Assembly: GCA_020891255.1 (NCBI GenBank)
Contig: BQFW01000002.1
Span: 2,356,001-2,420,000 of the forward strand
DNA from: Entomortierella parvispora E1425
Taxonomy: Eukaryota; Fungi; Mortierellomycota
DNA length: 64,000 nt
Direction of reading: 5' to 3'
This document shows, piece after piece, positions 5,356-38,538 of this stretch. Every line of letters starts with the position of its first letter. The first letter of the stretch is position 1. The translations under genes were made by a program, and so were the position numbers. The notes under the pieces were generated by a model. It ran no database searches. It was not told the origin of the DNA and was given only the letters and a program-made list of their open reading frames with translations.

Positions 5356-6263
5356 TTGCTTTATTGCTACGGCAGCTCTTGTGAAACACCCTACCACTGT
5401 GCCGTTAAGACGACTGACGAGAGGATAAGGAGCTCTGCTTTGGTGACCTACATAGTGTCCGCTCCAATGGTACCACATCCGGCTGTGGTCGAGAATGTCG
5501 CCTGCCCATCCTGTTGCTTCTCTTGTGAGAAGCTGGTAGACTTCAAGGAACACATCAACTCCAACCTCATTCATGACGCGGACCAGCCACTCGACGCCGA
5601 CAACGACTCGGGGCGATCTAAGAAGCGACCCAAATCTGTGTCGATTGTTGGTGAAAGGCAAATATATCCTTCTCGGCTGCCTTTGCCTTTCCACCTTCCG
5701 ACTGTCGTAAGATGCCTGATGATGTCTTCATGAAGCTGCAGGAGATCATGGCTGTCCTGTTTCTCACCAATAAGCATCTTAATCTCGAGCAGAGAGTGCT
5801 TGTTGCTGAAGAGACAGCCGCTCAACAATCGCTCTCAACCTTAAATGGGTGTAAGACGGCCTTCATTTCTTGTGCGAGGCAGCACATACTGCAGTCAACG
5901 ACTGGACTGGCACAGTTATGTGAGATGGTTGAGGGCGATGGGGAAACAGTCGGCGGTTCTTGAGGAGCTTGCACGATAATGTAGCGGCGAGCTAGATATA
6001 ACGCCGACTGACCACACGGATTGGCTCTTTTGTTTGCTGTCAACTGTCTACGACTGTGGATCGGTCCTCTTTATGAATACACTAAAACTATCATTCGTAG
6101 TGCCGGACATGGCTCCATTCAAATCCATCCAAGGAACCCATTCAGGGATACACCTGTAGCCAAAGCTAACCAAATGAATCTTGATGTAATTTCCAAAAGG
6201 GTGCTTCTCTACAGCACCATCAAGACGCCTTTTCAAGAGCAACATATAGATCAACGACGCTAG
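5356..6263 (+). pseudogene. Possible degenerate gene fragment with a C2H2-like motif
   Basis: CPSC-x12-H-x6-H (CPSCCFSCEKLVDFKEHINSNLIH) followed by protein-like text in other frames with stops. No coherent spliced model found. Confidence 0.2.
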
Positions 6264-7989: not shown

Positions 7990-10900
7990 ATGAGCAAAGG
8001 CGGGAACATCAAGGTCGTGGTCCGCTGTCGACCGCTCAACAGTCGAGGTAATGGTCCTGGACAATGGACATGCTACGCGAAACGCTGTAGTGAATTAGAG
8101 TGGACAAAAGAACTAATGAGACAGCGCCGTTCTTTCTTATTTTTTGCTTCCCGCCACGGATGATTGCATCCACCGACCTTGTTCTTTTGTACCTTTGTCT
8201 ACGGGATGGTCGCGCCATGGGAACTGTAACACAACGACTTCGCTACAAAAAATAACCACAGAGATTGCAAAGGAGTCAGAATGCATCCTTCACATGGACG
8301 GTAACATGACCACGATCCGAAAGCCCGAAGAAAACACCACAAAGTCGTTCTCGTTTGACCACTCGTACTGGTCCTTTGACAAGGCAGATCCCAACTACGC
8401 GGGACAACAACGGCTGTACGACGATCTGGGCGTCGAGCTGCTGAACCATTCTTTCAACGGATACAACACCTGCATTGTCGCCTGTAAGTGATAAAATGCT
8501 CTACTGGTCCATGCAAGAGAAAGAACAAACAGACGGGAGATGGCAGGAGCAGAATATGGCCGATTAGGTTGAGAGGCAAGGGGCGGTTGCTGGTAATTGA
8601 GAGCCATGGTCGGGGGGGGGGTTCTTCTTGTTCATCCAGTCGTTCCAGACAGCAGCATCTGGGCTGGGTGAGCCATGCGCTGGTATCCATTCCAGTGCCC
8701 CGGAGCTTGATTGCGAGCTCAAACGGGAAGGGATGGGAGATATCCTCTCCGCCCTGCGGTCGCGCCTTCCTTCAGAGCCGTTGCTCCCGTTGTGTTTTGG
8801 TTTAACCGCAGCAGAGAAGAGAAAGACGCAATTTAAGTCCAATGACCGGCCACTCGCCGCAAGATACTCATGTACCCCTGCGCTCCTTTCCTTCTTTTTA
8901 GATGGACAGACAGGAAGCGGAAAATCATACTCGATGGTAAAAAAGAGAGCACGAGAAACAAGATCCCCAGGATCTAGGCAGAGATCATCTGTTAATTGTT
9001 ACCAGACTGACCAACCCCTTTGCCCTCTGTTTGCCCTGGTTATTAGATGGGTTATGGAGAGGAGCGGGGTATAATCCCGCTTTCTTGCCATGAACTGTTC
9101 CGCAGGATAGAGGCCAATAAGGACCCATCTCTCAGCTATAGAGTCGAGGTTTCCTACATGGAGATCTACTGTGAACGCGTACGGGACTTGCTGAACCCAA
9201 AAAACAAGGGGCATCTCAAAGTGCGGGAGCATCCCTCCTTAGGACCCTATGTCGAGGATCTTTCCAAACTCATGGTCACCTCTTTTCGTGACATTGAGAA
9301 TCTGATGGACGAGGGAAACAAGGTATGGGACACAAGGACACAGGAACACAAAACCAAACAATGACCGCATTTCATCGTATTCTGTTTACATCCTTTTCTT
9401 CAGCACTCACCAGTCATCACTTTTATTTCTTTGTGTTTCCTACGAGTGCTCCTTTAGGCTCGTACAGTGGCCGCAACAAACATGAACGAAACTTCAAGTC
9501 GGTCCCACGCAGTCTTTACCGTCCTCTTGACGCAAAAGAGACATGACGCAGAGACTAGGTTAGACACGGAGAAAGTCTCTAGAATTTGGTACGTCACAGA
9601 TTCAACACGACGGCAGTGATGTTGTCAAGTGTTGCTCTCTGCTAACCTTGGCTTACTTCATGTTTAGTCTCGTCGATTTGGCAGGAAGCGAGCGAGCTAA
9701 TTCAACAGGAGCGACAGGAGCTCGTCTGAAAGAAGGTGCAAATATTAACAGATCCTTGACGACTCTTGGAAAAGTCATTTCCGCACTGGCAGACGCATCA
9801 AGCGCACCTCCAGCGGTTCCAAAGAGAGGTGCCAAAAAGGTCCCAGAGATATTTGTCCCATACCGAGACTCGGTAAGAATTGTTTCTATGGTAGCTTATC
9901 AGGCTCGACATCTGTTTTTTACTGACGACATTGTCTTTGGGGATACATCAGGTTTTAACATGGCTTCTCAAGGATTGCCTTGGCGGAAATTCAAAGACCA
10001 CAATCATCGCAGCCCTTTCCCCAGCTGATATCAATTACGACGAAACCCTCAGCACACTGAGGTACGCAGATCAGGCCAAGAGAATCAAGAACAAGGCAGT
10101 TGTCAATGAGGACCCCAACGCCAAACTTATTCGCGAGCTCAAGGAAGAGCTTTTGGAGTTGCGTTCAAAACTTGGTGTGTATGATCCCGCACAGGCTGGC
10201 GCTGACCTGCAGTCACCCAACGCCCTCGTTACCATCGTGGATCTTCATGGAAATGCTCGGACGCTCACCAAGGACCAGCTACAGGATGAAGTCCAGGCTT
10301 CAGAAAAGATCATGGCCGAATTAAACGAAACCTGGGAAGAGAAGCTGCGAAAGACTCAGGAAATTCAACAGGAGCGTGAAAAGACCCTGGAGGAACTCGG
10401 CATTTCTGTAGAGAAGGGTCATATCGGAGTTCACACACCAAAAAGGATGCCCCACTTGGTCAACTTGAACGAAGATCCCTTGATGTCAGAATGTCTCGTG
10501 TATCAACTCAAGCCAGGAAAGACCTATGTTGGCAAGCTCGAATCCTCTATACCCGCCGACATACTTTTATCTGGAACCAATATCCACGACGCCCATTGCT
10601 ACTTTGAAAACAACAACTCGTCAGTGACGCTTTATCCAGGAAAGACATCCATGACCATGGTCAACGGTCTACGTATCAGTAAACCTAAAAAGCTTCGATC
10701 TGGATTCCGAGTGATCCTGGGCGACTACCATGTCTTCCGCTTCAATCATCCGGAGGAGGTTCGGCGAGAGAGGGATCTGCAGCAACAACAGCAAGGCACT
10801 CCAGGCTCTAGTATGGTCTCGTCTCCGATCCAACGCGTACAGGCAAGTCTCTCGAATGGGATGGAAGAAGACCGTCCAGACGAAAGACCGGATTCGCCGT

Positions 10901-27973: not shown

Positions 27974-29216
27974 TTAGGAATGCAATCCCAGGCATAAAGC
28001 CGGGCTCCATATCCGCAGGAATAAAGGGGGATCAGGTACCCATGCCTCGGGTTATAACACCCACATACAGCCCTTCCAAGGGACCGGGACCGGGATCGGG
28101 ACCAGGATCAGCGGCATGACGACGTCAGCCAGCAGCAGCTGCGACATGGCATTGTGGCATTAGAGTCAGACGTGGAGGTATGTCCTATCGGTCTTTTCAC
28201 CTTTTTGTTGGCTTAGCTGCAGCCAAGTAGGCTTAACTACAGCTCGGTAGGCTCTTTATCTGAGTGAATTATTGAATCTTCCCAACTCGTATTGTCTGAC
28301 CTATTTCATCATCCTCTAGATTTTTTGGGTTGCAGTGAACCGTCCTACGCAGACTCGGCATGACTCAGCCATAGCCGATCTTGGTTCAAGAGCCTTACGC
28401 GCACCATTCTCAATGAGAGCTTTGTAACTGTGGACTGTGACCAAGAATTGTACTCACAAAAAAAAAAAAAAGACTGCAACATGAGGGACACGATGTGTAC
28501 AGAAAGAAGGATCCATCCACAGCTTCCTGGTGGCGAATGGTGCCACACTCAAGTCAATCAAGAAAAGATTCATCAGGTCGCGTACAAGCCCGTGCACACT
28601 GCGTTGTGGGAGAGGACGACCAAGGAGGCGTTGTCATGATGAAAATGGCGGTTCACCTCACAAAGGACCGACAGTACGTTGCCAGAACACTCGCATTCCA
28701 GTAGGAAATGTAGAAATAGAAGTGATGGTAAAAAGCACAAAAAAATTGGTGGCAAGGCGCGTGAACTAAAAAACCTACAGAGTGGTGCGCTTCAAGTGAC
28801 GCATCGAAGTGAATTCAACGCGCCTGTGGTGTTGAGCGCCATTGACTTCCCCCCGTCGCTCCTGGATTCATATTGCCCCTGATATTTTCCCCACTAGAGC
28901 AGCCCATCACAGCAGTGATCCGCCCTCGATTCTTTTTCAAAAGCAAGGACTGTGTAATGCACGATTTCTGCCTTGGCGTTGCGCTACGTTGCCCTTGACT
29001 TCCCGCTGTCCTTGATTTATTTTTCCTGTCGTTGCACTTCATCTGCCTTCAGCTGGCCAGTCTGTCTTGGACCTGCATGCCCCTGGACCAATGCTGTGCT
29101 TACTCCACTGTAGTGGTTCATGCACGATTCCATGCACTATCTACTTTAGATTTTTCGTCATCTCACGAATTCTTCTCAGTACCCTGTCGACGATCACACT
29201 ACCCCTCATCGTTCCT

Positions 29217-29225
29217 CTATATAAA
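29217..29225 (+). promoter_or_regulatory. TATA box of peptide gene A
   Basis: CTATATAAA about 200 bp upstream of the ATG. Equivalent TATAAA elements lie upstream of the other three copies (about 30925, 33037, 34840). Confidence 0.6.
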
Positions 29226-29417
29226 GCCCTCATGCCACCATCATCTACTCATACAACAACACGCTCTAACATTCCCCTCTTCACCACTACCCACCTTCCT
29301 TCAATGTAAGAACGCCCGTCTTTTTGGTGCAAGCTCTGAGTGATCAATTTGCGGTAGTGCTGGCCTGGTTGCTTCCCACATCCATCTCATATATGGCATC
29401 CTTTTATCTTTTCATAG

Positions 29418-29663
29418 ATGAGATACACTAGCATTTTGGCTTTCGTTGCATTGGCCTCCGTCGCCATGGCTAAGGTCCGATGCCGCTGCTCCGATGATGG
29501 CAACAGCATCAACAAGGCCGATACCGCGTTTGCTTGTAACCGTGGTTTGGACTATGGCGTCGAATCGGACGGATACTGCTATGTTGTGGTCAAGTCCAAC
29601 GCAGTAGCCGTCCTGAGGTACTGCCCCAACGAAAACACTTCGTCCTGCCAGACCGTTGCTTAA
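29418..29663 (+). CDS. Small secreted 6-Cys peptide A, KP6-beta-like toxin candidate; 5'UTR intron 29306-29417
   Basis: 81 aa with signal peptide MRYTSILAFVALASVAMA and mature C-x-C-x15-C-x13-C-x14-C-x7-C. Four paralogs have intact frames. Confidence 0.88.
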   Translation: MRYTSILAFVALASVAMAKVRCRCSDDGNSINKADTAFACNRGLDYGVESDGYCYVVVKSNAVAVLRYCPNENTSSCQTVA

Positions 29664-31135
29664 AAATGCAAGATGAGCAACTGCCCATTCATTGCGACAA
29701 TGAGAATACGGCATGAACAAAGCAAGGACAAAGAATAGAATGGAAAGGAGACCTGTCAAGGATGGGAGATAGTGGGAAAGTTGCTATCCTAATCATCAAG
29801 ATCGGATTTCGTACTCTGTTCTATCTGAATAAACCTCCATTCTTATTGTTCCCATACACAACGAGACAGTTCTCTTCTTTTTTATTTTTTTATTTTACAA
29901 TGCCTGTTGACATGGACGGCAAAAGATAAAGAAGGAAGGCCCAATAGAACTTTGGAACGATGATAATGCTGGTAGAATGGTGCGACATGAGACACCTGCA
30001 TGACTTGGTCAGATATACCAAGTGGCCAGGAAACTTGGAAATCGTGACAAGTCGCGGAAGGTTGGTGAACAAACAGTGAGTAGCAAGACGCGTGAGAAGT
30101 CGAAACCTATGGCGGCGAACTTATTAGAGATGATTCAACGTGCCCACTCTGTTAAGGACATTGGCATCCGCAGACCTTCCCTGACTCTTTTCTGTGCCCC
30201 TTGATTTTTCGTGGGCCTTGATGTTTTCAGGTCCCAGTTTTTGGCTTGCCATTGATTTGGTTGAATCATTCTTACCACGCCATTATACGCGCCCTTGATT
30301 CTGCTATGCGGGTTCTTTTGGAGTGGGAGAGAGAGGTGGGATTCATGCAGAATCCTTTGAGCTGAATTTTATTTCTTCTGCTTTGGTGCACCGTCCTTGA
30401 TGTTCTCGTCTTACAACCCTTGAGGTCTGTTCAATGACGGCTTCTGTCAATTGCTGTCGCGAGGAGTTTATCTTTGTTTCTTCCAGCTGCCTTGGATATC
30501 TGCATGCCCTCCTAATTTTTTTTGGTATTCTGTTGCTCTTGATTCTAGGCAATTTTTTAGGGGGGGAAACTTTTTTTTCTTCTTTGACGACCCCACGAAT
30601 TTTTTTCTTGTAAGTCGTTGCTTCTTACCTGCCCTGCCAGCTGTGCGCTTCCCTGGATCTGCACACCACAGACTGTTTGTTTCCATAATCTTTTTTTCTT
30701 TTTGCTTCCCGTTGCTATGTTATGAGCAGATCATTCCCATTTCACGAGTCAACAAAGCCCCTGCATATATTTTTTCCTCTTAATGCTACGCCTACTCCAT
30801 GATAGTGGATTCGTTCAAGGTCTCTGCACTACCATTGTTGTCGCCATCTCACGAATTCCTCTCATTTGCTCTCCCTACGTACCATCCATCTATACTTCTA
30901 TCGCTAGCCACCGTTCGAATTTTCCCTATAAAAGAACCCTCGCATCCCCCGCCATCTATCTCACAACACGCTCCCTCAAAAACACCAAGCTTTCCCCTCT
31001 CTTCACTACCACCCACTTTTATTCAATGTAAGAAACCAGAACCATGCTTTCATTTTTTTTTTTTTTTTTTTTTTTTTGGCCCTCTTCACGTTAATCTCAC
31101 GAAATGGCATCGCTCTTGTCTTTTTTTTCATCTAG

Positions 31136-31381
31136 ATGAGATACACTTCCCTTTTGGCTTTCATTGGATTGGCTTCCGTCGCCATGGCCAAGGTCCGTTG
31201 CCAGTGCTCGGATGATGGTAACAGCATCAACAAGGCCAGTACCGCGTCTGCCTGCTCCCGCGGTCTCAACTATAACGTCGAGTCGGATGGATTCTGCTAC
31301 ATTGTCAACGACTCGAACGCTTCGAGAGTCCTCCCCTACTGCCCCAACAGTATTTTTTCGTACTGCCAGGTCGTTGTCTAA
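31136..31381 (+). CDS. Small secreted 6-Cys peptide B; 5'UTR intron 31028-31135
   Basis: 81 aa, same signal peptide type and Cys spacing as A. Confidence 0.88.
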   Translation: MRYTSLLAFIGLASVAMAKVRCQCSDDGNSINKASTASACSRGLNYNVESDGFCYIVNDSNASRVLPYCPNSIFSYCQVVV

Positions 31382-31567
31382 AACAACAACAGCGACAACA
31401 ACCCGTCTTGCGATACTGGCGATGACATCGTAGACGGGTCTGGCCATTCAAATCAGATTTTCTTGTCGTTGTTTTTTAATCCGAATAAACCCTCAGTTTC
31501 TGATGGCTCTTTCATCATGTAAACTACATTTTTATGTTCTACAATGCATTGAAACCAGGGTCTTTTT

Positions 31568-31873
31568 GTGTGGATCTTCTGTGTGGATCCTTTATTGAAA
31601 AGAGCGCGAACAGGATTACTTCTTGTTGTAATGCTTCTTGAACAGGGGGTGGTGCTCCTTCTTGTCCTTGTCCTTGAGATTGACCGACTTGTTGTACTCG
31701 ATGTACGCCATCTGGTCGCCACCGCTCAAACTCTTCAGATCACCTACTGTCCTCTTGACTCCGTGTGATCCTCCCGCAAGACTGGTGCCCACATGGCTCA
31801 ATACTCATCCGCCACCAGCTCCGCTCCGCCGTGCGGTGTTGCCAGTCAAGTCGTCCGCATCGTGTTCAACATC
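31568..31873 (-). pseudogene. Duplicated, truncated 3' end of XPB/SSL2 with a premature stop
   Basis: Near-identical to about 35520-35822. TCA changed to TGA at 31807-31805. No upstream XPB sequence is present. Confidence 0.9.
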
Positions 31874-32154
31874 GCCTTTCAAAGGGACCGGGACCAGGAC
31901 CAGGACCAGAACTAGGATCAAGAACAGCGGCAGGACGACATCTACAGCATCAGCTAAAACATCGGCAACAGCAGCAGCGACATGACGCTGTGGCATGAGA
32001 TTCAGACGTGGAAGGTACGTCCTATCGCCTATTGGTGCTTTTCGCATATTGTTGGCTTAACTACAGCTCAGTATGTTTGAAGCGCTTCCTAAGTGAGTTA
32101 CTGCATCTTCCCAGCTCGTATTGTCTGACCTATTTCATCATGCCACTCTAGTCT

Positions 32155-32186
32155 TTTTCTTTTTTTTTTTTTTTTTTTTTTTTTTT
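32155..32186 (+). repeat. Long poly(T) tract
   Basis: About 30 T almost uninterrupted. The homologous position in unit 1 (about 28321) has only 6 T. Confidence 0.85.
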
Positions 32187-33235
32187 GTGGTTGCAGTGAA
32201 CACTCTTCCTAAACTACACAGACTCAGCATTTCTCAGACATAGCCGATCTTGGTGCAAGAGCCTTACGCGGACCATTATCAGGAGAGAACTTTGTAATTG
32301 TGGACGGAGACCAGGAGCTGTACTCACAAAAAAAAAAAAAAAGATTGACCTGAGGGACGCGATGTTTCAGAATGTAGGATCTAGCGACAGTTTCTAGGTT
32401 TGGCGAATGGTGCCACACTCGATTCGAACACTCACATTGCAGTAGGAAGCGTAGAAATGGTAGTCATGGTAAAAAGACTCATAAAAATTGGTGGCAAGGC
32501 GCGTGAACTGAAAAACCATAGAGCGGGTGCAAGCGCCTGTGGTGTTGGGAGCCATTGACTTCTCTCCCCATCGCTCCTGAATTCCTGTTGCCCCTGATAT
32601 TTTCCTGGCTAGAACTTCCCATCAGCGTTCCACCCTCGATTCTTTTCAGAAACAAGGGCCGTGTAATGCACGATATCTGCCTTGGTATTGGGTTACGTTG
32701 CCCTTGATTCCCGACTGCCCTTGATTTTTGGTTGCCCTTGATTTATTTTTCCTGTCGTTGCATTTCATCTGCTCAGTTGGTCAGTCTGTCCTAGATCTGC
32801 ATGCCCCTGGATTTTTTTCGTTGCCCAGAGTTTCACTTGCCGTTGTTCTGGGTCGATCAATATTCATTCCAGGTACGCCTTTGAAAGAATAATGCTGTGC
32901 TTACTCTATCGTAGTGGATCATACACGATTCTATGTACTATCTACTTTAGATTTTTCGTCATCTCACGAATTCTTCTCAGTCTGTCCACGATTCTATGCT
33001 TCTTTCAATAACCACACTACCCCTCATCGTTCCTCTATATAAAGCCCTCATGCCACCATCATCTACTCATACAACAACACGCTCTAACATTCCCCTCTTC
33101 ACCACTACCCACCTTCCTTCAATGTAAGAACGCCCGTCTTTTTGGTGCAAGCTCTGAGTGATCAATTTGCGGTAGTGCTGGCCTGGTTGCTTCCCACATC
33201 CATCTCATATATGGCATCCTTTTATCTTTTCATAG

Positions 33236-33481
33236 ATGAGATACACTAGCATTTTGGCTTTCGTTGCATTGGCCTCCGTCGCCATGGCTAAGGTCCGATG
33301 CCGCTGCTCCGATGATGGCAACAGCATCAACAAGGCCGATACCGCGTCCGCTTGTACCCGTGGTTTGAACTATGGCGTCGAATCGGACGGATACTGCTAC
33401 GTTGTCATTAACTCGAACGCTTCGAAGGTCCTCCCCTTCTGCCCTAAGCAAGATACTTCGAACTGCCAGATCGTCGTTTAA
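33236..33481 (+). CDS. Small secreted 6-Cys peptide A'; 5'UTR intron 33124-33235
   Basis: 81 aa, identical to A for the first 37 codons and diverged afterwards. Confidence 0.88.
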   Translation: MRYTSILAFVALASVAMAKVRCRCSDDGNSINKADTASACTRGLNYGVESDGYCYVVINSNASKVLPFCPKQDTSNCQIVV

Positions 33482-35075
33482 GAGACTGCAAGATGAGCAA
33501 CCGGCCCTTTCATTATGGCAACAAGAATACGGCATGAACAAAACATGGGCAAAGACCAGAATGGAGAGGAGACGCGTCAAGGATGGGGAATAGTGGGAAA
33601 GTTGATGTCCTAATCATCAAGACCGGATTTCGCACTCTGTTCCATTTGAATAAACCTCCATTCTATTTGTGCCCATACACAACAAGACCGTTCTCTTTTT
33701 TTTATTTTTATTTTACAATACCTGTCGACATGGGCGGCAGAATATGAATGATGAAGACTGAATAGGACTTTGGAGAGATGATAGTGGTGGTGGCAATGGT
33801 GCTGGAATGGCGGGATATGAGAACACTTGCATGACTTGCTCAGATATCCACCCAGATGATTAAGAAACTTAGAGATCGTGACAAGTCGCGGAATGATCGT
33901 GAAAAAAATGTTGGATAGCAAGACGCCTGAGAACTCGAAACCTAAGGCGGTGCATTCTTTAGAGATGAATCAACGTGCCCAATGGTGTTGAGGGCCATTG
34001 GCATCCGCAGATCACCCCTGACTTTTGTTTTCTGTTGCCCTTGATTCTTGAGGCTTCTGTCCTTGATTCTTTGCGGCCCTTGATGTTCTCAGTTACCCAG
34101 CTTTTGACTTGCTACAGATTTTGGTGGAATCATTCTTGCCACACCATTCTACGCCCTTGATTCTTCTATGCATGCTCTTTTGGAGTGGGAAAGAAGGGTG
34201 GGGCTCATGCAGAATTCTTTGAACTGCATTTTTTTTCCTCTTCCTGCCTTGATGTGTCGCCCTTGATGTTTCCATCTTGCCCTTGATGTTGACCTATCCT
34301 TGATTTTTTGAGTGTTACCCTTGAGATCAGTCGAACGACAGTTTCTACCTGTTGCCGTAGCAAGGAGTTTGTCTTCTTCTCCCCTTCTAGTTGCCCTAGA
34401 TATCTGCATGCCCTCCCTAATTTTTTTTCAGTTTTCTGTTGTTGCCCTTGATTCTCGGCTATCCTTGAGGGGGGCAACTATTTTTTTTTTTTTTTTTTTC
34501 TTTTTTCCTGCATGTCATTGCTTCTTACCTGCCCTTACTAGATATGCTCTGCCCTGGATCTGCACGCCGCAGATTGTCTGTTTCCAAGATCTTTTGATCT
34601 TTTTCGTTTTGCTTACCGCTGCTATGTTATGAGCAGATCATTCCCATTACACCAGTCAACAAAGCCCCTGCATATATTTTTTTCCCTTAATGCTACGCTT
34701 ACTCCATGACAGTGGATTCGCTCAAAGTCTCTGCACTACCATTGTTGTCGCCATCTCACGAATTCCTCTCATTTGCTCTCCCTACGTACCGTTCATGTAT
34801 AATTCTATCACTAACCACACCACCTCCTCAAATTTCCTTTATAAAGGAACCCTCACACTCCCCTCCGTCTATCTCACAACACGCTCTCTCAAAAACACCA
34901 AGCTTTCCCCTCTCTTCACTACCACCCACTTTTATTCAATGTAAGAGACCCAGCTCTTTCTACCCTTCCCGTTTGGGAACCATGCTTTCTTTCTTTTTTT
35001 TTTTTTTTTTGGCCCTCTCTTCACGTAAATCTCACAAAATGGCATCGCTCTTGTCTTTTTTTTTTTTTCATCTAG

Positions 35076-35321
35076 ATGAGATACACTTCCCTTTTGGCTT
35101 TCATTGGATTGGCTTCCGTCGCCATGGCCAAGGTCCGTTGCCAGTGCTCGGATGATGGTAACAGCATCAACAAGGCCAGTACCGCGTCTGCCTGCACCCG
35201 CGGTCTCAACTATAACGTCGAGTCGGATGGATTCTGTTACATTGTCGTCAACTCGAACGCGGCGAAGGTCCTCCCCTTGTGCCCCAATCGCATGTTTTCG
35301 TACTGCCAGGTCGTTGTCTAA
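35076..35321 (+). CDS. Small secreted 6-Cys peptide B'; 5'UTR intron 34941-35075
   Basis: 81 aa, identical to B for the first 40 codons, with 8 aa differences afterwards. Confidence 0.88.
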   Translation: MRYTSLLAFIGLASVAMAKVRCQCSDDGNSINKASTASACTRGLNYNVESDGFCYIVVNSNAAKVLPLCPNRMFSYCQVVV

Positions 35322-35563
35322 AATAATAACAGAGACACCAGCCTGTTTTTGCGATGCTGGCAATGGTATCGAGGACGGGTCTGACCATTCAAATCGGATT
35401 TTCTTCTTGTTGTTGCTTTTCGATATGAATAAACCCTCATTTTCCGATGGCTCTTTCATCACGAGATTTTTTTCATTTTTATTTTCTACATACATTGCAA
35501 CAATGGTCTTTTTGTGTGGATCTTGTGTGTGTGGATCTTTTATTGAAAATAGCGCGAACAGGA

Positions 35564-38538
35564 TTACTTCTTGTTGTAATGCTTCTTGAACAAGGGGTGG
35601 TGCTCCTTCTTGTCCTTGTCCTTGAGATTGACCGACTTGTTGTACTCGATGTACGCCATCTGGTCGCCACCACTCAAACTCTTCAGACCACCTACTGTCC
35701 TCTTGACTCCATGTGATCCTCCCGCAAGACTGGTGCCCACATGGCTCAATACTGATCCGCCACCAGCTCCGCTCCGCCGCGTGGTGTTGCCAGTCAAGTC
35801 ATCCGCATCGTGTTCAACATCCTCGTTCAGATCGGCTTCACTCTCCTGAGCCAAGAGCACAGTCTGCAAGAGTGACATTTGCTCCGCAGGTGTAGAGTAC
35901 ACCAAGTCTTGTTCCTGATCCATGCCATCCAAGTTGGTAATGACCTTGAACGCGTAACCCTGATCAATCAAAAATTGCTGTCTCTTGGTCGAATAATACA
36001 TCTCTTGCGTGTCCTTGGAGACCAACGAGTAAAAGAACGCGTTGAATCCTTCGTCGTTTCTGCGCTTTGCTCGTAAAATACGTCCCAACCGTTGAGCTTC
36101 CTGACGGCGCGATCCATAATGGGAAGAGACCTGGATTAGACAGGTTGCCTCTGGGAGATCAATCGACGTATCTCCAACCTTGGACAAAAAGATGGTGTTG
36201 ATTTTGGGATTGTGCTGAAAGTTCTGCAAGATGCGCACACGTTCCTGCTGACTGGTCTCACCATAAATGAAGGGCTTTTCCAGTTTGCGAGCATAGGCCA
36301 CCAAGGCAAACACGTTATCCGAAAACACAATGATCTTGTCGCCTCTCTCTTCATGGTATCGGATCAAATACTGGCAGGCCTGGAACTTGTTTGGGTTCAT
36401 CACATACAGCAGAGTTCGCTTTCGCGAAGACTCGCGCAGATATTCTCGGTAAAAGGCTGGGGTCATTGGGCACCAAACCTCCGCGCACTGCACATTGGCG
36501 ATATGACCACGCGAAGCCAAATCCATCCAATTAGCCTCGTACAGTTTTGGTCCAATCAAAAAGTTGAGATCGTCAATCTTTTCATCCTCTCGAACCAAAG
36601 TGGCAGTCAACCCGAGCTTTGCGTGGGCAGCAATGGTCGTCAAGACCTTTCGGAACATGTTGGCGGGCACCACGTGCACCTCATCCAGCAGCAGGAAACC
36701 CCACTCTCGACTCTTCAAAAAGTTCATCATCTTTTGAGAGTCGTGCGATCTGTTTCGAGTGTTGGCCACCATACTGTAAGTAGAGATCACAATTCCTGCA
36801 GCTCCAAGGAACTTTTCCTTTTGATCCGAAGTGAACATGGCGATTTGATGGGGTTTGATGTTGGACCAGAGCAAGAACTGTTGCTTCCACTGCAAGACGG
36901 ACACTGATGACGTGCAAAGGACAAGAGTGCTCTTCTTCACAGTACAGGCTGCCGTAATACCCACAAGCGTCTTTCCTGCTCCACAAGGCAACACAATGAT
37001 TCCAGATCGAGCACGACCATTTCCAAACATTTTGCTCAACGACTTTTCCTGATACTATTTGAGAGGATGGGTATCTCACAGTCAGGACATTACGTTGATA
37101 GGTTAACTATGCATCATTCATCTTGTAAGAAAAACATACCGGTCGAATGACTGTAATTGGTTTCAAGTCAATCTCCAGATCTGGGTTAAGGGTATCGTTT
37201 CTGAAGTCATATTCTTCCAACATGGGATAGTCCAGCTCGTTACATCTCTTCTTGACAATCTATATTATCGGAAAATAAGTATGTTAGCCAGTGCCCAGAA
37301 ATACTAAGGAATAAAATTGGAGGAAAATAATTACCTCCACCGAAGATGAGCTAATCTCAAAGGCGTGCACATCATCATTCTCAACATCATCATCATCTCG
37401 ATCCAGTCCAACAACGGCGAAAATCTCATCTTCGCCAGTTGCCTGTGAGGCAGCGCCGGTAGCGGCAGACCCTCCGGCTGCTTTGTTGGGATCAGGAACT
37501 TCCTTTTTCACACCTGGGATGACAACGTCCTTGGCGTTTGGTGCTTTCCCTGTAATTAGTCCTGCATTGTTTGGCTCATCATCACCAATCAGTCGGGATT
37601 CCTTAATGACGGGGTCCCGGAGCAAAGTCTGCAGCATCTCCGGATGTGAGGATTCGACAAAGTATCGGTTGTGCTTCAAGACAAGCTTAACTTTTCCGTA
37701 AGACAGAGTACAGTCTCTGATCAATCCCAAGATACTCTCGGGAACTGGTACCTTGGACAGACGGCTTAGCACCTCGATAATATCTTCTGTCTCCAATCCC
37801 ACAGACACAGCAGCGTATAACGAGTATGGAGTCAACTTGTACTCGTGAATATGCGAAGGTCTAATAACACCAGAGAGATCAACTGTTAGCCGATTGGATC
37901 TCAGAGACACAGCATCTGAAAGAAACCAGAATGGGTTATTTACCTGCTCACTGGCTCAGCAATGGTAATCAAGAAATCAATGGCCTTTTCTGCAATAGGC
38001 GAGAATCCTTCCAGGATAATATGACCGTCCTCTGTAATCCACAATGGACGCGATCCATGATCCGTCTTGAGGGGCAACCATGTGTAGTCGTGATCGCCGA
38101 AAATGTATGACACGCTGTCGCGTTGAAAGTTGTGTGACTGATTGACGGCATCCATGGTCGCATGCTTGGGGACTACAGAAAACAAAAGAGTACATGTCAA
38201 TAAAAAAACACTCTTATATGTGAGCGAACACAGGATCTGCTTCAACAAGTCATTACCGACAAGTTTATCGGAAAAGTCCTCCTCGATATCCTGGTCCTCT
38301 TCTGCATCAATGTCATGAATTGGTCCGTCATTCTTCCGACGTCTGCTTTGACTTTCAGCGGGTGAGTCTATGAACACAATTCGCAGCAAAAGGTATCAAT
38401 AACAAATTGCATTCACTGGCCTTCTCAGCACGCATGTTCCCAAGAATAAGAATAAGATGAAACATGGCGTCATGCATGCATGCATGCATGCATGGCAAAT
38501 GGTGGCAAATTACCGTCCAAGCCTCGTTTGACACCCAT
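35564..38538 (-). CDS. SSL2: TFIIH helicase XPB (RAD25/ERCC3), multi-exon
   Basis: [37 protein letters not shown] Walker [15 protein letters not shown]. Confidence 0.97.
38471..38494. repeat. (CATG)6 perfect palindromic microsatellite in XPB intron 1
   Basis: catgcatgcatgcatgcatgcatg seen directly. Confidence 0.9.

Follow-up and report, generated by a model that had tools for sequence, protein, structure and literature searches.

A tandem array of four nuclear genes for putatively secreted proteins with a predicted KP6 killer-toxin fold in Entomortierella parvispora

A 64,000-nucleotide stretch of the genome of the soil fungus Entomortierella parvispora E1425 (contig BQFW01000002.1 of assembly GCA_020891255.1, positions 2,356,001 to 2,420,000; hereafter the window) carries four paralogous nuclear genes, named A, B, A' and B', whose products are probably secreted proteins of the KP6 fold, distantly homologous to the beta subunit of the Ustilago virus killer toxin KP6, likeliest to serve as antimicrobial toxins or effectors, and probably dimeric. 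The parts of this reading differ in strength: the adoption of the KP6 killer-toxin fold is well supported by structure prediction, a distant homology to KP6 beta is likely from sequence comparison, and secretion, dimerisation, toxicity and target are what we infer. An earlier reading of the window, made from the letters alone (the sequence-only reading), had rightly attributed the DNA to an early-diverging fungus, the host being a member of Mortierellomycota; strain E1425 was isolated from soil and harbours a Mycoavidus endobacterium, related to Burkholderiaceae (PMC8759367).

The KP6 fold was defined, and the structure of Zt-KP6-1 solved, by De Guillen et al. (2025; PMC12382754). Their inventory counts 1,307 KP6-fold proteins over 1,014 fungal genomes, with a stated range of ascomycetes and basidiomycetes, and KP6 beta stands in structural group 2, together with BAS4, ECP28 and Zt-KP6-4. 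Inhibition of fungal growth is reported for UmV-KP6 and Zt-KP6-1, and such activity is hypothesised for groups 2 and 3. In KP6 itself, the alpha and beta subunits form a stable heterodimer, in which alpha recognises the target via its N-terminal helix and beta is needed for toxicity. Other KP6-fold effectors have no known toxicity, such as BAS4, ECP28 and SIX5/AvrLm10A, the latter (group 1) pairing with neighbouring effectors.

As the sequence-only reading had stated, all four genes are intact and encode 81-residue precursors; they are ATG-initiated open reading frames (ORFs) on the plus strand (Table 1). The proteins are 73-90% identical in pairwise comparison (73-77% for A versus B), and their alignment has 58 invariant columns, the six cysteines among them, whose spacing in the 63-residue mature part is the one first described (C4-x-C6-x15-C22-x13-C36-x14-C51-x7-C59). 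An in-frame TAG abuts each ATG on its 5' side, so that upstream extension of the four ORFs is impossible, and a stop codon also lies directly after the domain: each ORF comprises a putative signal peptide and one domain, in keeping with the proposal that these are stand-alone single domains made without a polyprotein precursor. Of the N-terminal 18 residues, one is basic and 13 form a hydrophobic core (Kyte-Doolittle mean of 2.4-2.6), and the junction between A-M-A and K-V/M-R-C is invariant in all relatives, from five species. On inspection of the sequences, these features point to a signal peptide cleaved after A-M-A, and the proteins would share the small size and the N-terminal signal peptide that characterise secreted KP6-fold proteins. 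Removal of this 18-residue peptide would release a six-cysteine domain of 63 residues (about 6.8 kDa), beginning directly at the first strand (K-V-R-C of beta1) in A and B. Pfam scans of the four proteins returned nothing meaningful; that the ORFs are real genes rather than chance frames follows from their pairwise ratios of nonsynonymous to synonymous divergence (dN/dS of 0.27-0.54 across the mature domain) and from the occurrence of orthologues in four other Mortierellaceae species.

For the mature B protein, AlphaFold2 (AF2), supplied with eight sequences, returned a model (pLDDT 88.6, pTM 0.71) with a beta-alpha-beta-beta-alpha-beta layout, in which strands cover residues 2-5, 36-38 and 58-61 and helices residues 15-26 and 41-46. 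DSSP assignment of two AF2 models recovered these elements, the second helix ending at residue 46 or 49, together with a bridge at residue 30; beta2 is merely a bridge in one model and uncalled in the other. In an unbiased Foldseek scan of the PDB, KP6 beta came first for the B model (4gvb_B; probability 0.99, TM-score 0.69, 25% identity), with KP6 alpha (1kp6) at a TM-score of 0.72 and Zt-KP6-1 (6qpk_A) at 0.55, and the same three entries, which are all the solved KP6-fold structures, filled ranks 1-3 for models of two family members. The KP6-fold assignment of the sequence-only reading is thereby upheld at the level of predicted structure, where the alpha/beta sandwich beta1-H1-beta2-beta3-H2-beta4 of the fold is found. 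The cysteines are placed in beta1 (C4 and C6), in H1 (C22), in beta3 (C36), just after H2 (C51) and in beta4 (C59), positions that would allow the beta1-H2 and H1-beta3 disulfides of the KP6 fold. ESMFold2, as used in the complex prediction described below, folded A and B without alignments (pLDDT 92). Shape neighbours in the Atlas are secreted Ascomycota proteins, and the BAS4 family appears there at feature rank 4 (score 0.85), as a lead only. Nothing matched convincingly in the viral fold library BFVD, whose search did not bring up the KP6 preprotoxin either.

Similarity to KP6 beta is also found at the sequence level. A hidden Markov model (HMM) built from nine mature-domain sequences had KP6 beta as its best match among 177,635 PDB sequences (E 0.021, 18.1 bits), and the alignment brings together four cysteines, the motif v-x-C-Q-C-x-D, an A-C pair in helix 1 and D-G-F-C in strand 3; an eight-sequence profile gave an E value of 0.055 against the same protein. 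The KP6 beta landmarks VMCQCVD, T-x-x-ACS and EKDGFC, which the sequence-only reading had quoted, are present in 4gvb_B as printed by HMMER. When the 40-residue aligned segment of KP6 beta was shuffled, its real score of 18.5 bits was reached by none of 20,000 free shuffles (maximum 16.4 bits, composition retained) and by none of 20,000 shuffles with the four cysteines fixed (maximum 16.6 bits), a test that is somewhat optimistic as the segment was picked after the fact. Since no shuffle reaches 18.5 bits, the similarity exceeds what composition and cysteine spacing would give. A four-sequence profile that included the signal peptides found nothing in the PDB, the signal appearing only with mature domains and orthologues. 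By sequence, the proteins can be linked to the UmV-KP6 beta family through a weak but specific match; of the profile similarity to KP6 that had been anticipated, the part concerning beta is weak but real, and none was detected for KP6 alpha (1KP6, or 4GVB chain A).

The differences from known systems are substantial. KP6 beta is a Kex2-type product of an alpha/beta preprotoxin encoded by a double-stranded RNA (dsRNA) virus, whereas the E. parvispora genes are chromosomal, stand-alone and equipped with their own signal peptides: no Kex2-type release of alpha and beta from one preprotoxin is seen, and the genes are part of a 3.99-Mb chromosomal contig rather than of a dsRNA satellite or virus. 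KP6 beta works with an alpha subunit, whereas the array has no alpha-type partner; nor is there a distinct alpha subunit engaged in a heterodimer, as the split between A and B is lineage-specific and the predicted dimer symmetric. The alignment to KP6 alpha begins at alpha residue 13, the N-terminal hydrophobic helix of alpha being absent in A and B, and the domain is about 10 residues shorter than KP6 beta, in which the alignment places insertions. The host of KP6 belongs to Basidiomycota, whereas the present family belongs to Mortierellomycota; likewise Zt-KP6-1, Zt-KP6-4, BAS4 and ECP28 (groups 2 and 3) are reported solely from Ascomycota and Basidiomycota (PMC12382754). Sequence similarity to the nuclear KP6-fold proteins of Dikarya is not detectable, with 14% identity in structural alignment, and in solution Zt-KP6-1 is a monomer, in contrast to the symmetric dimer predicted for A with B. 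In the searched literature, KP6 proteins are not connected with Mortierella or Mucoromycota in any paper. Nuclear KP6-fold proteins that stand alone are already amply described in Dikarya, so that the novelty is smaller than the sequence-only reading implied and the finding is an extension, not a new principle; what is new is the phylum Mortierellomycota, how compact the domain is, and the trace of sequence likeness that it keeps to the beta subunit of the virus.

Prediction of a complex between mature A and mature B gave an ipSAE of 0.67 in all three runs, compared with 0.12 for the best of three controls; this mark is reached by 51 of 78 solved complexes and by 2 of 108 mismatched pairs. The A:B runs agreed in 100% of their contacts, with a partner pLDDT of 92, and the predicted interface is the same on both chains (residues 2, 4, 7, 9-11, 41, 44-45, 48 and 54-61), the tightest contacts being made by residues 55-60 with residues 55-60 of the partner chain. 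The predicted arrangement is a two-fold symmetric dimer formed by antiparallel beta4-beta4' pairing, and the protein would probably act in this dimeric form, through its edge strand beta4 plus helix 2. Because the predicted dimer is symmetric, homodimer and heterodimer are inseparable; of the A:B heterodimer envisaged in the sequence-only reading, the prediction supports the dimer but not the preference for a heterodimer over a homodimer.

A word-indexed search returned relatives of 53-64% identity from four species alone (Podila humilis, P. epigama, Actinomortierella ambigua and Linnemannia gamsii), and an exhaustive HMM search of 1.84 billion representative proteins added one further true member, a second L. 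gamsii copy (P0008). The other two matches of that search were rejected as relatives, one being a teneurin-like repeat protein and the other a junk ORF made of tandem repeats. In the searched data, the family appears tiny and confined to Mortierellaceae. A profile scan of the E. parvispora genome itself returned the four copies only, a fifth match (E 7.8) having no matching ORF. In L. gamsii (JAWHKS010000086.1), the two copies diverge from each other across about 4 kb, their translated 5' leaders are identical, and they represent an independent inverted duplication of the same family in another genus; the loci of the other species have one copy each within the available sequence. In the maximum-likelihood tree, a single clade unites the four E. 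parvispora proteins (98/98) and a second one the L. gamsii pair (94/93), which makes the duplications lineage-specific. Orthologue loci in other genera have different neighbours, none of them conserved. In A. ambigua (JAAAIA010000332.1), the annotated 70-residue protein P0005 is truncated N-terminally by its gene model, and the open frame (1-246), situated at the contig's extremity, runs upstream into a complete signal peptide (M-K-Y-I-S-I-L...).

Several points weigh against the reading of the four genes as encoding KP6-related dimeric toxins. In single-sequence PDB searches, KP6 beta is not significant (E 0.92, or unlisted), and KP6 is not among the matches of the 1.84-billion-protein search. 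The training of AlphaFold2 included KP6 structures, and its alignments here consisted of 8-9 sequences, while the complex score may stem from memorisation of 4GVB by the model and is blind to which family members pair. The mature peptides are near neutral (pI 6.2-8.3), unlike many membrane-active peptides, and the mechanism of KP6 is unknown, pores having been proposed (PMC12382754). The likeness to KP6 might also be no homology at all, if an unrelated disulfide-rich protein had come to share a generic ferredoxin-like beta-alpha-beta-beta-alpha-beta sandwich. The marginal E value of 0.021 would leave room for such convergence, which we nevertheless regard as very improbable: the three solved KP6-fold structures take the first three ranks with each of two family members, the sequence search independently puts KP6 beta first, with four cysteines and conserved non-cysteine motifs aligned and a score reached by none of the 40,000 shuffles, and both sides belong to the same class of small, secreted, fungal proteins. 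Another question is whether A-type and B-type proteins are obligate heterodimer subunits of a two-component toxin, functionally mirroring KP6 alpha and beta, as the sequence-only reading suggested from their fixed pairing. This would explain the presence of one gene of each type per duplicated unit, both units keeping an intact pair; moreover, the A:B complex passes its test (0.67 versus 0.12 for the best control), and five of the ten fixed differences between A and B (positions 54, 55, 56, 58 and 61) fall in the predicted interface, where the residues are polar in the A-type and hydrophobic or aromatic in the B-type. However, the four copies form one clade, L. gamsii duplicated independently and in opposite orientation, and the available loci of other species hold single copies, so that the A and B pair is not ancestral. 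Both types are beta-like, share 73-77% identity, and lack the N-terminal hydrophobic helix of KP6 alpha; homodimers are equally compatible with the perfectly symmetric interface, close relatives of a partner also pass the complex test, and retention of A with B in each unit is automatic in a segmental duplication. On these grounds, the parallel with the two KP6 subunits is not supported in the form proposed, and an obligate two-component toxin is judged quite unlikely.

The function most likely for the family is that of an extracellular antimicrobial (chiefly antifungal) toxin or of an interaction effector in soil competition, a role proposed by analogy with KP6 beta, Zt-KP6-1 and other KP6-fold proteins of groups 2 and 3. 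The proteins could instead kill nothing, and act as effectors or signals on plants, nematodes or bacteria (including Mycoavidus), or as carriers in the manner of SIX5/AvrLm10A. KP6-fold effectors without known toxicity do exist, as mentioned above (PMC12382754), E. parvispora E1425 does carry a Burkholderiaceae-related endobacterium (PMC8759367), and the near-neutral charge of the mature peptides is in line with such a role. Yet the closest match, both in structure and in sequence, is the toxic beta subunit, the duplicated units contain no partner effector gene (only a relic of the XPB gene), Mortierellaceae are chiefly saprotrophs, and nothing here links the genes to the endobacterium; a non-killing role is accordingly considered unlikely. 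The toxin or interaction effector that we favour would carry the KP6 fold, an important class of fungal toxins and effectors, into an early-diverging phylum of soil saprotrophs that host endobacteria, and its sequence-level likeness to viral KP6 beta gives a handle on the origin of the viral toxin domain. One may go further and propose that the Mortierellaceae family is the closest surviving cellular lineage to the source of the Ustilago virus KP6 domain, and that a two-component killer re-evolved in E. parvispora, a proposal that we hold to be a long shot. If true, the KP6 beta-type killer domain would predate the split between Mortierellomycota and Dikarya, and the dimeric toxin of A-type and B-type chains would have re-evolved via divergence of the beta4 interface strand.

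The array is flanked by TOG/XMAP215 exons upstream and by a bromodomain protein gene downstream (Pfam scan), and adjoins the helicase gene XPB, whose large ORF, encoding the C-terminal part, is 100% identical to the Entomortierella parvispora protein; that protein and the peptide genes are encoded on one and the same 3.99-Mb contig. Sitting among housekeeping genes, the array is chromosomal, and the nuclear, non-viral location claimed in the sequence-only reading is confirmed. It consists of two tandem units of about 3.9 kb, each with one A-type and one B-type gene, that are 87% identical across 3,606 aligned bases (MAFFT). The likeness between A and B is limited to about 290 bp at 76-82% identity in self-comparison, which indicates that the A/B duplication is older than the duplication of the unit. 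In this lineage, an older A/B duplication would have been followed by tandem duplication of the 3.9-kb unit, in which the neighbouring 3' end of XPB was copied too: unit 2 stops on its right within XPB's last exon, and unit 1 accordingly terminates in an XPB relic. This relic is 96-99% identical to the functional copy at 35400-35829, well above the 87% average of the units, which suggests gene conversion from the live XPB gene.

A second trace of conversion concerns the toxin-like genes themselves. The perfectly identical 335-bp tract shared by the two units comprises 223 bp of upstream sequence and the first 112 nt of A/A', and the next 100 bp are the most divergent (68%). Over the first 37 mature codons, dN as well as dS is several-fold below its value over the last 26, which argues for gene conversion rather than selection; conversion of the promoter, the signal peptide and the N-terminal half is evident from these comparisons. 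Pairwise dN/dS values in the variable C-terminal third are 0.35-0.66, and remain below 1 in every comparison, indicating purifying selection overall on the four copies. Positive (diversifying) selection was considered and is not demonstrated, the ratio being below 1 even in the C-terminal third. Each of the eight differences between B and B' occupies a site at which A and A' are likewise distinct (hypergeometric P 1.7e-6; 8e-5 when no more than 40 sites are taken as free to vary). The repeatedly changing mature positions (23, 40-41, 45-46, 50 and 54-55) make up a small patch, and the data fit relaxed constraint and recurrent selection alike, either of which could account for the recurrent changes. 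In the array, conversion would homogenise promoters, signal peptides and N-terminal halves, while changes go on arising at a few surface positions of H2, of the loop between H2 and beta4, and of beta4. The four copies, whose differences are concentrated in one surface patch and the predicted dimer strand, offer natural variants for structure-function studies.

Table 1. Positions of the genes, duplicated segments and candidate elements in the window; the L. gamsii row follows the numbering of the examined piece of JAWHKS010000086.1.
Feature	Position	Strand	Basis
Gene A: 81-residue precursor, 18-residue signal-like peptide and 63-residue six-cysteine KP6-like domain	29418..29663	+	ORF, alignment, profile match E 2.1e-34 in own-genome scan
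Gene B: 81-residue precursor; copy modelled (pLDDT 88.6)	31136..31381	+	ORF, alignment, structure prediction
Gene A': copy of A in second tandem unit; 5' 112 nt identical to A, 3' third diverged	33236..33481	+	ORF, unit alignment
Gene B': copy of B in second tandem unit; 94% nucleotide identity to B	35076..35321	+	ORF, pairwise comparison
Tandem unit 1: A, B and relic of XPB 3' end	28070..31881		self-BLAST, MAFFT
Tandem unit 2: A' and B'; right end inside last exon of functional XPB	31874..35829		self-BLAST, MAFFT
XPB/RAD25 relic: last ~85 codons and 3' flank, in-frame stop at 31805-31807; duplication junction	31453..31881	-	translations, repeat family D3
335-bp perfectly identical tract, likely gene conversion	29195..29529 = 33013-33347		unit alignment
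Last large exon of functional XPB/RAD25/ERCC3 helicase gene (C-terminal part; ORF 35564-37036)	35564..37039	-	Pfam ERCC3_RAD25_C, E 5e-131
CCCTTGAT cluster, 11 of the window's 14 motifs; candidate cis-element	30198..34452	+	motif count
T-rich stretches with TAG directly before ATG	29406-29420, 31124-31138, 33224-33238, 35064-35078	+	sequence inspection
L. gamsii copies	5906-6259; 9896-10252	-; +	translation

The upstream regions hold a repeated motif, CCCTTGAT, which occurs 14 times in the window compared with 3.2 expected, a count reached by none of 100 shuffles. Eleven of these motifs lie on the plus strand, in clusters that precede B, A' and B' by 500-1,000 bp, and make CCCTTGAT a candidate shared cis-regulatory element. 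Before all four start codons, a T-rich stretch ends in TAG, reading TTTTCATAG or TCATCTAG immediately followed by ATG, and resembles a splice acceptor; an intron of the 5' untranslated region may end exactly at the ATG. Runs of more than 20 T are found about 60-80 bp upstream of B (31055-31078) and B' (34990-35010), belonging to repeat family D12, and none at the A-type genes.

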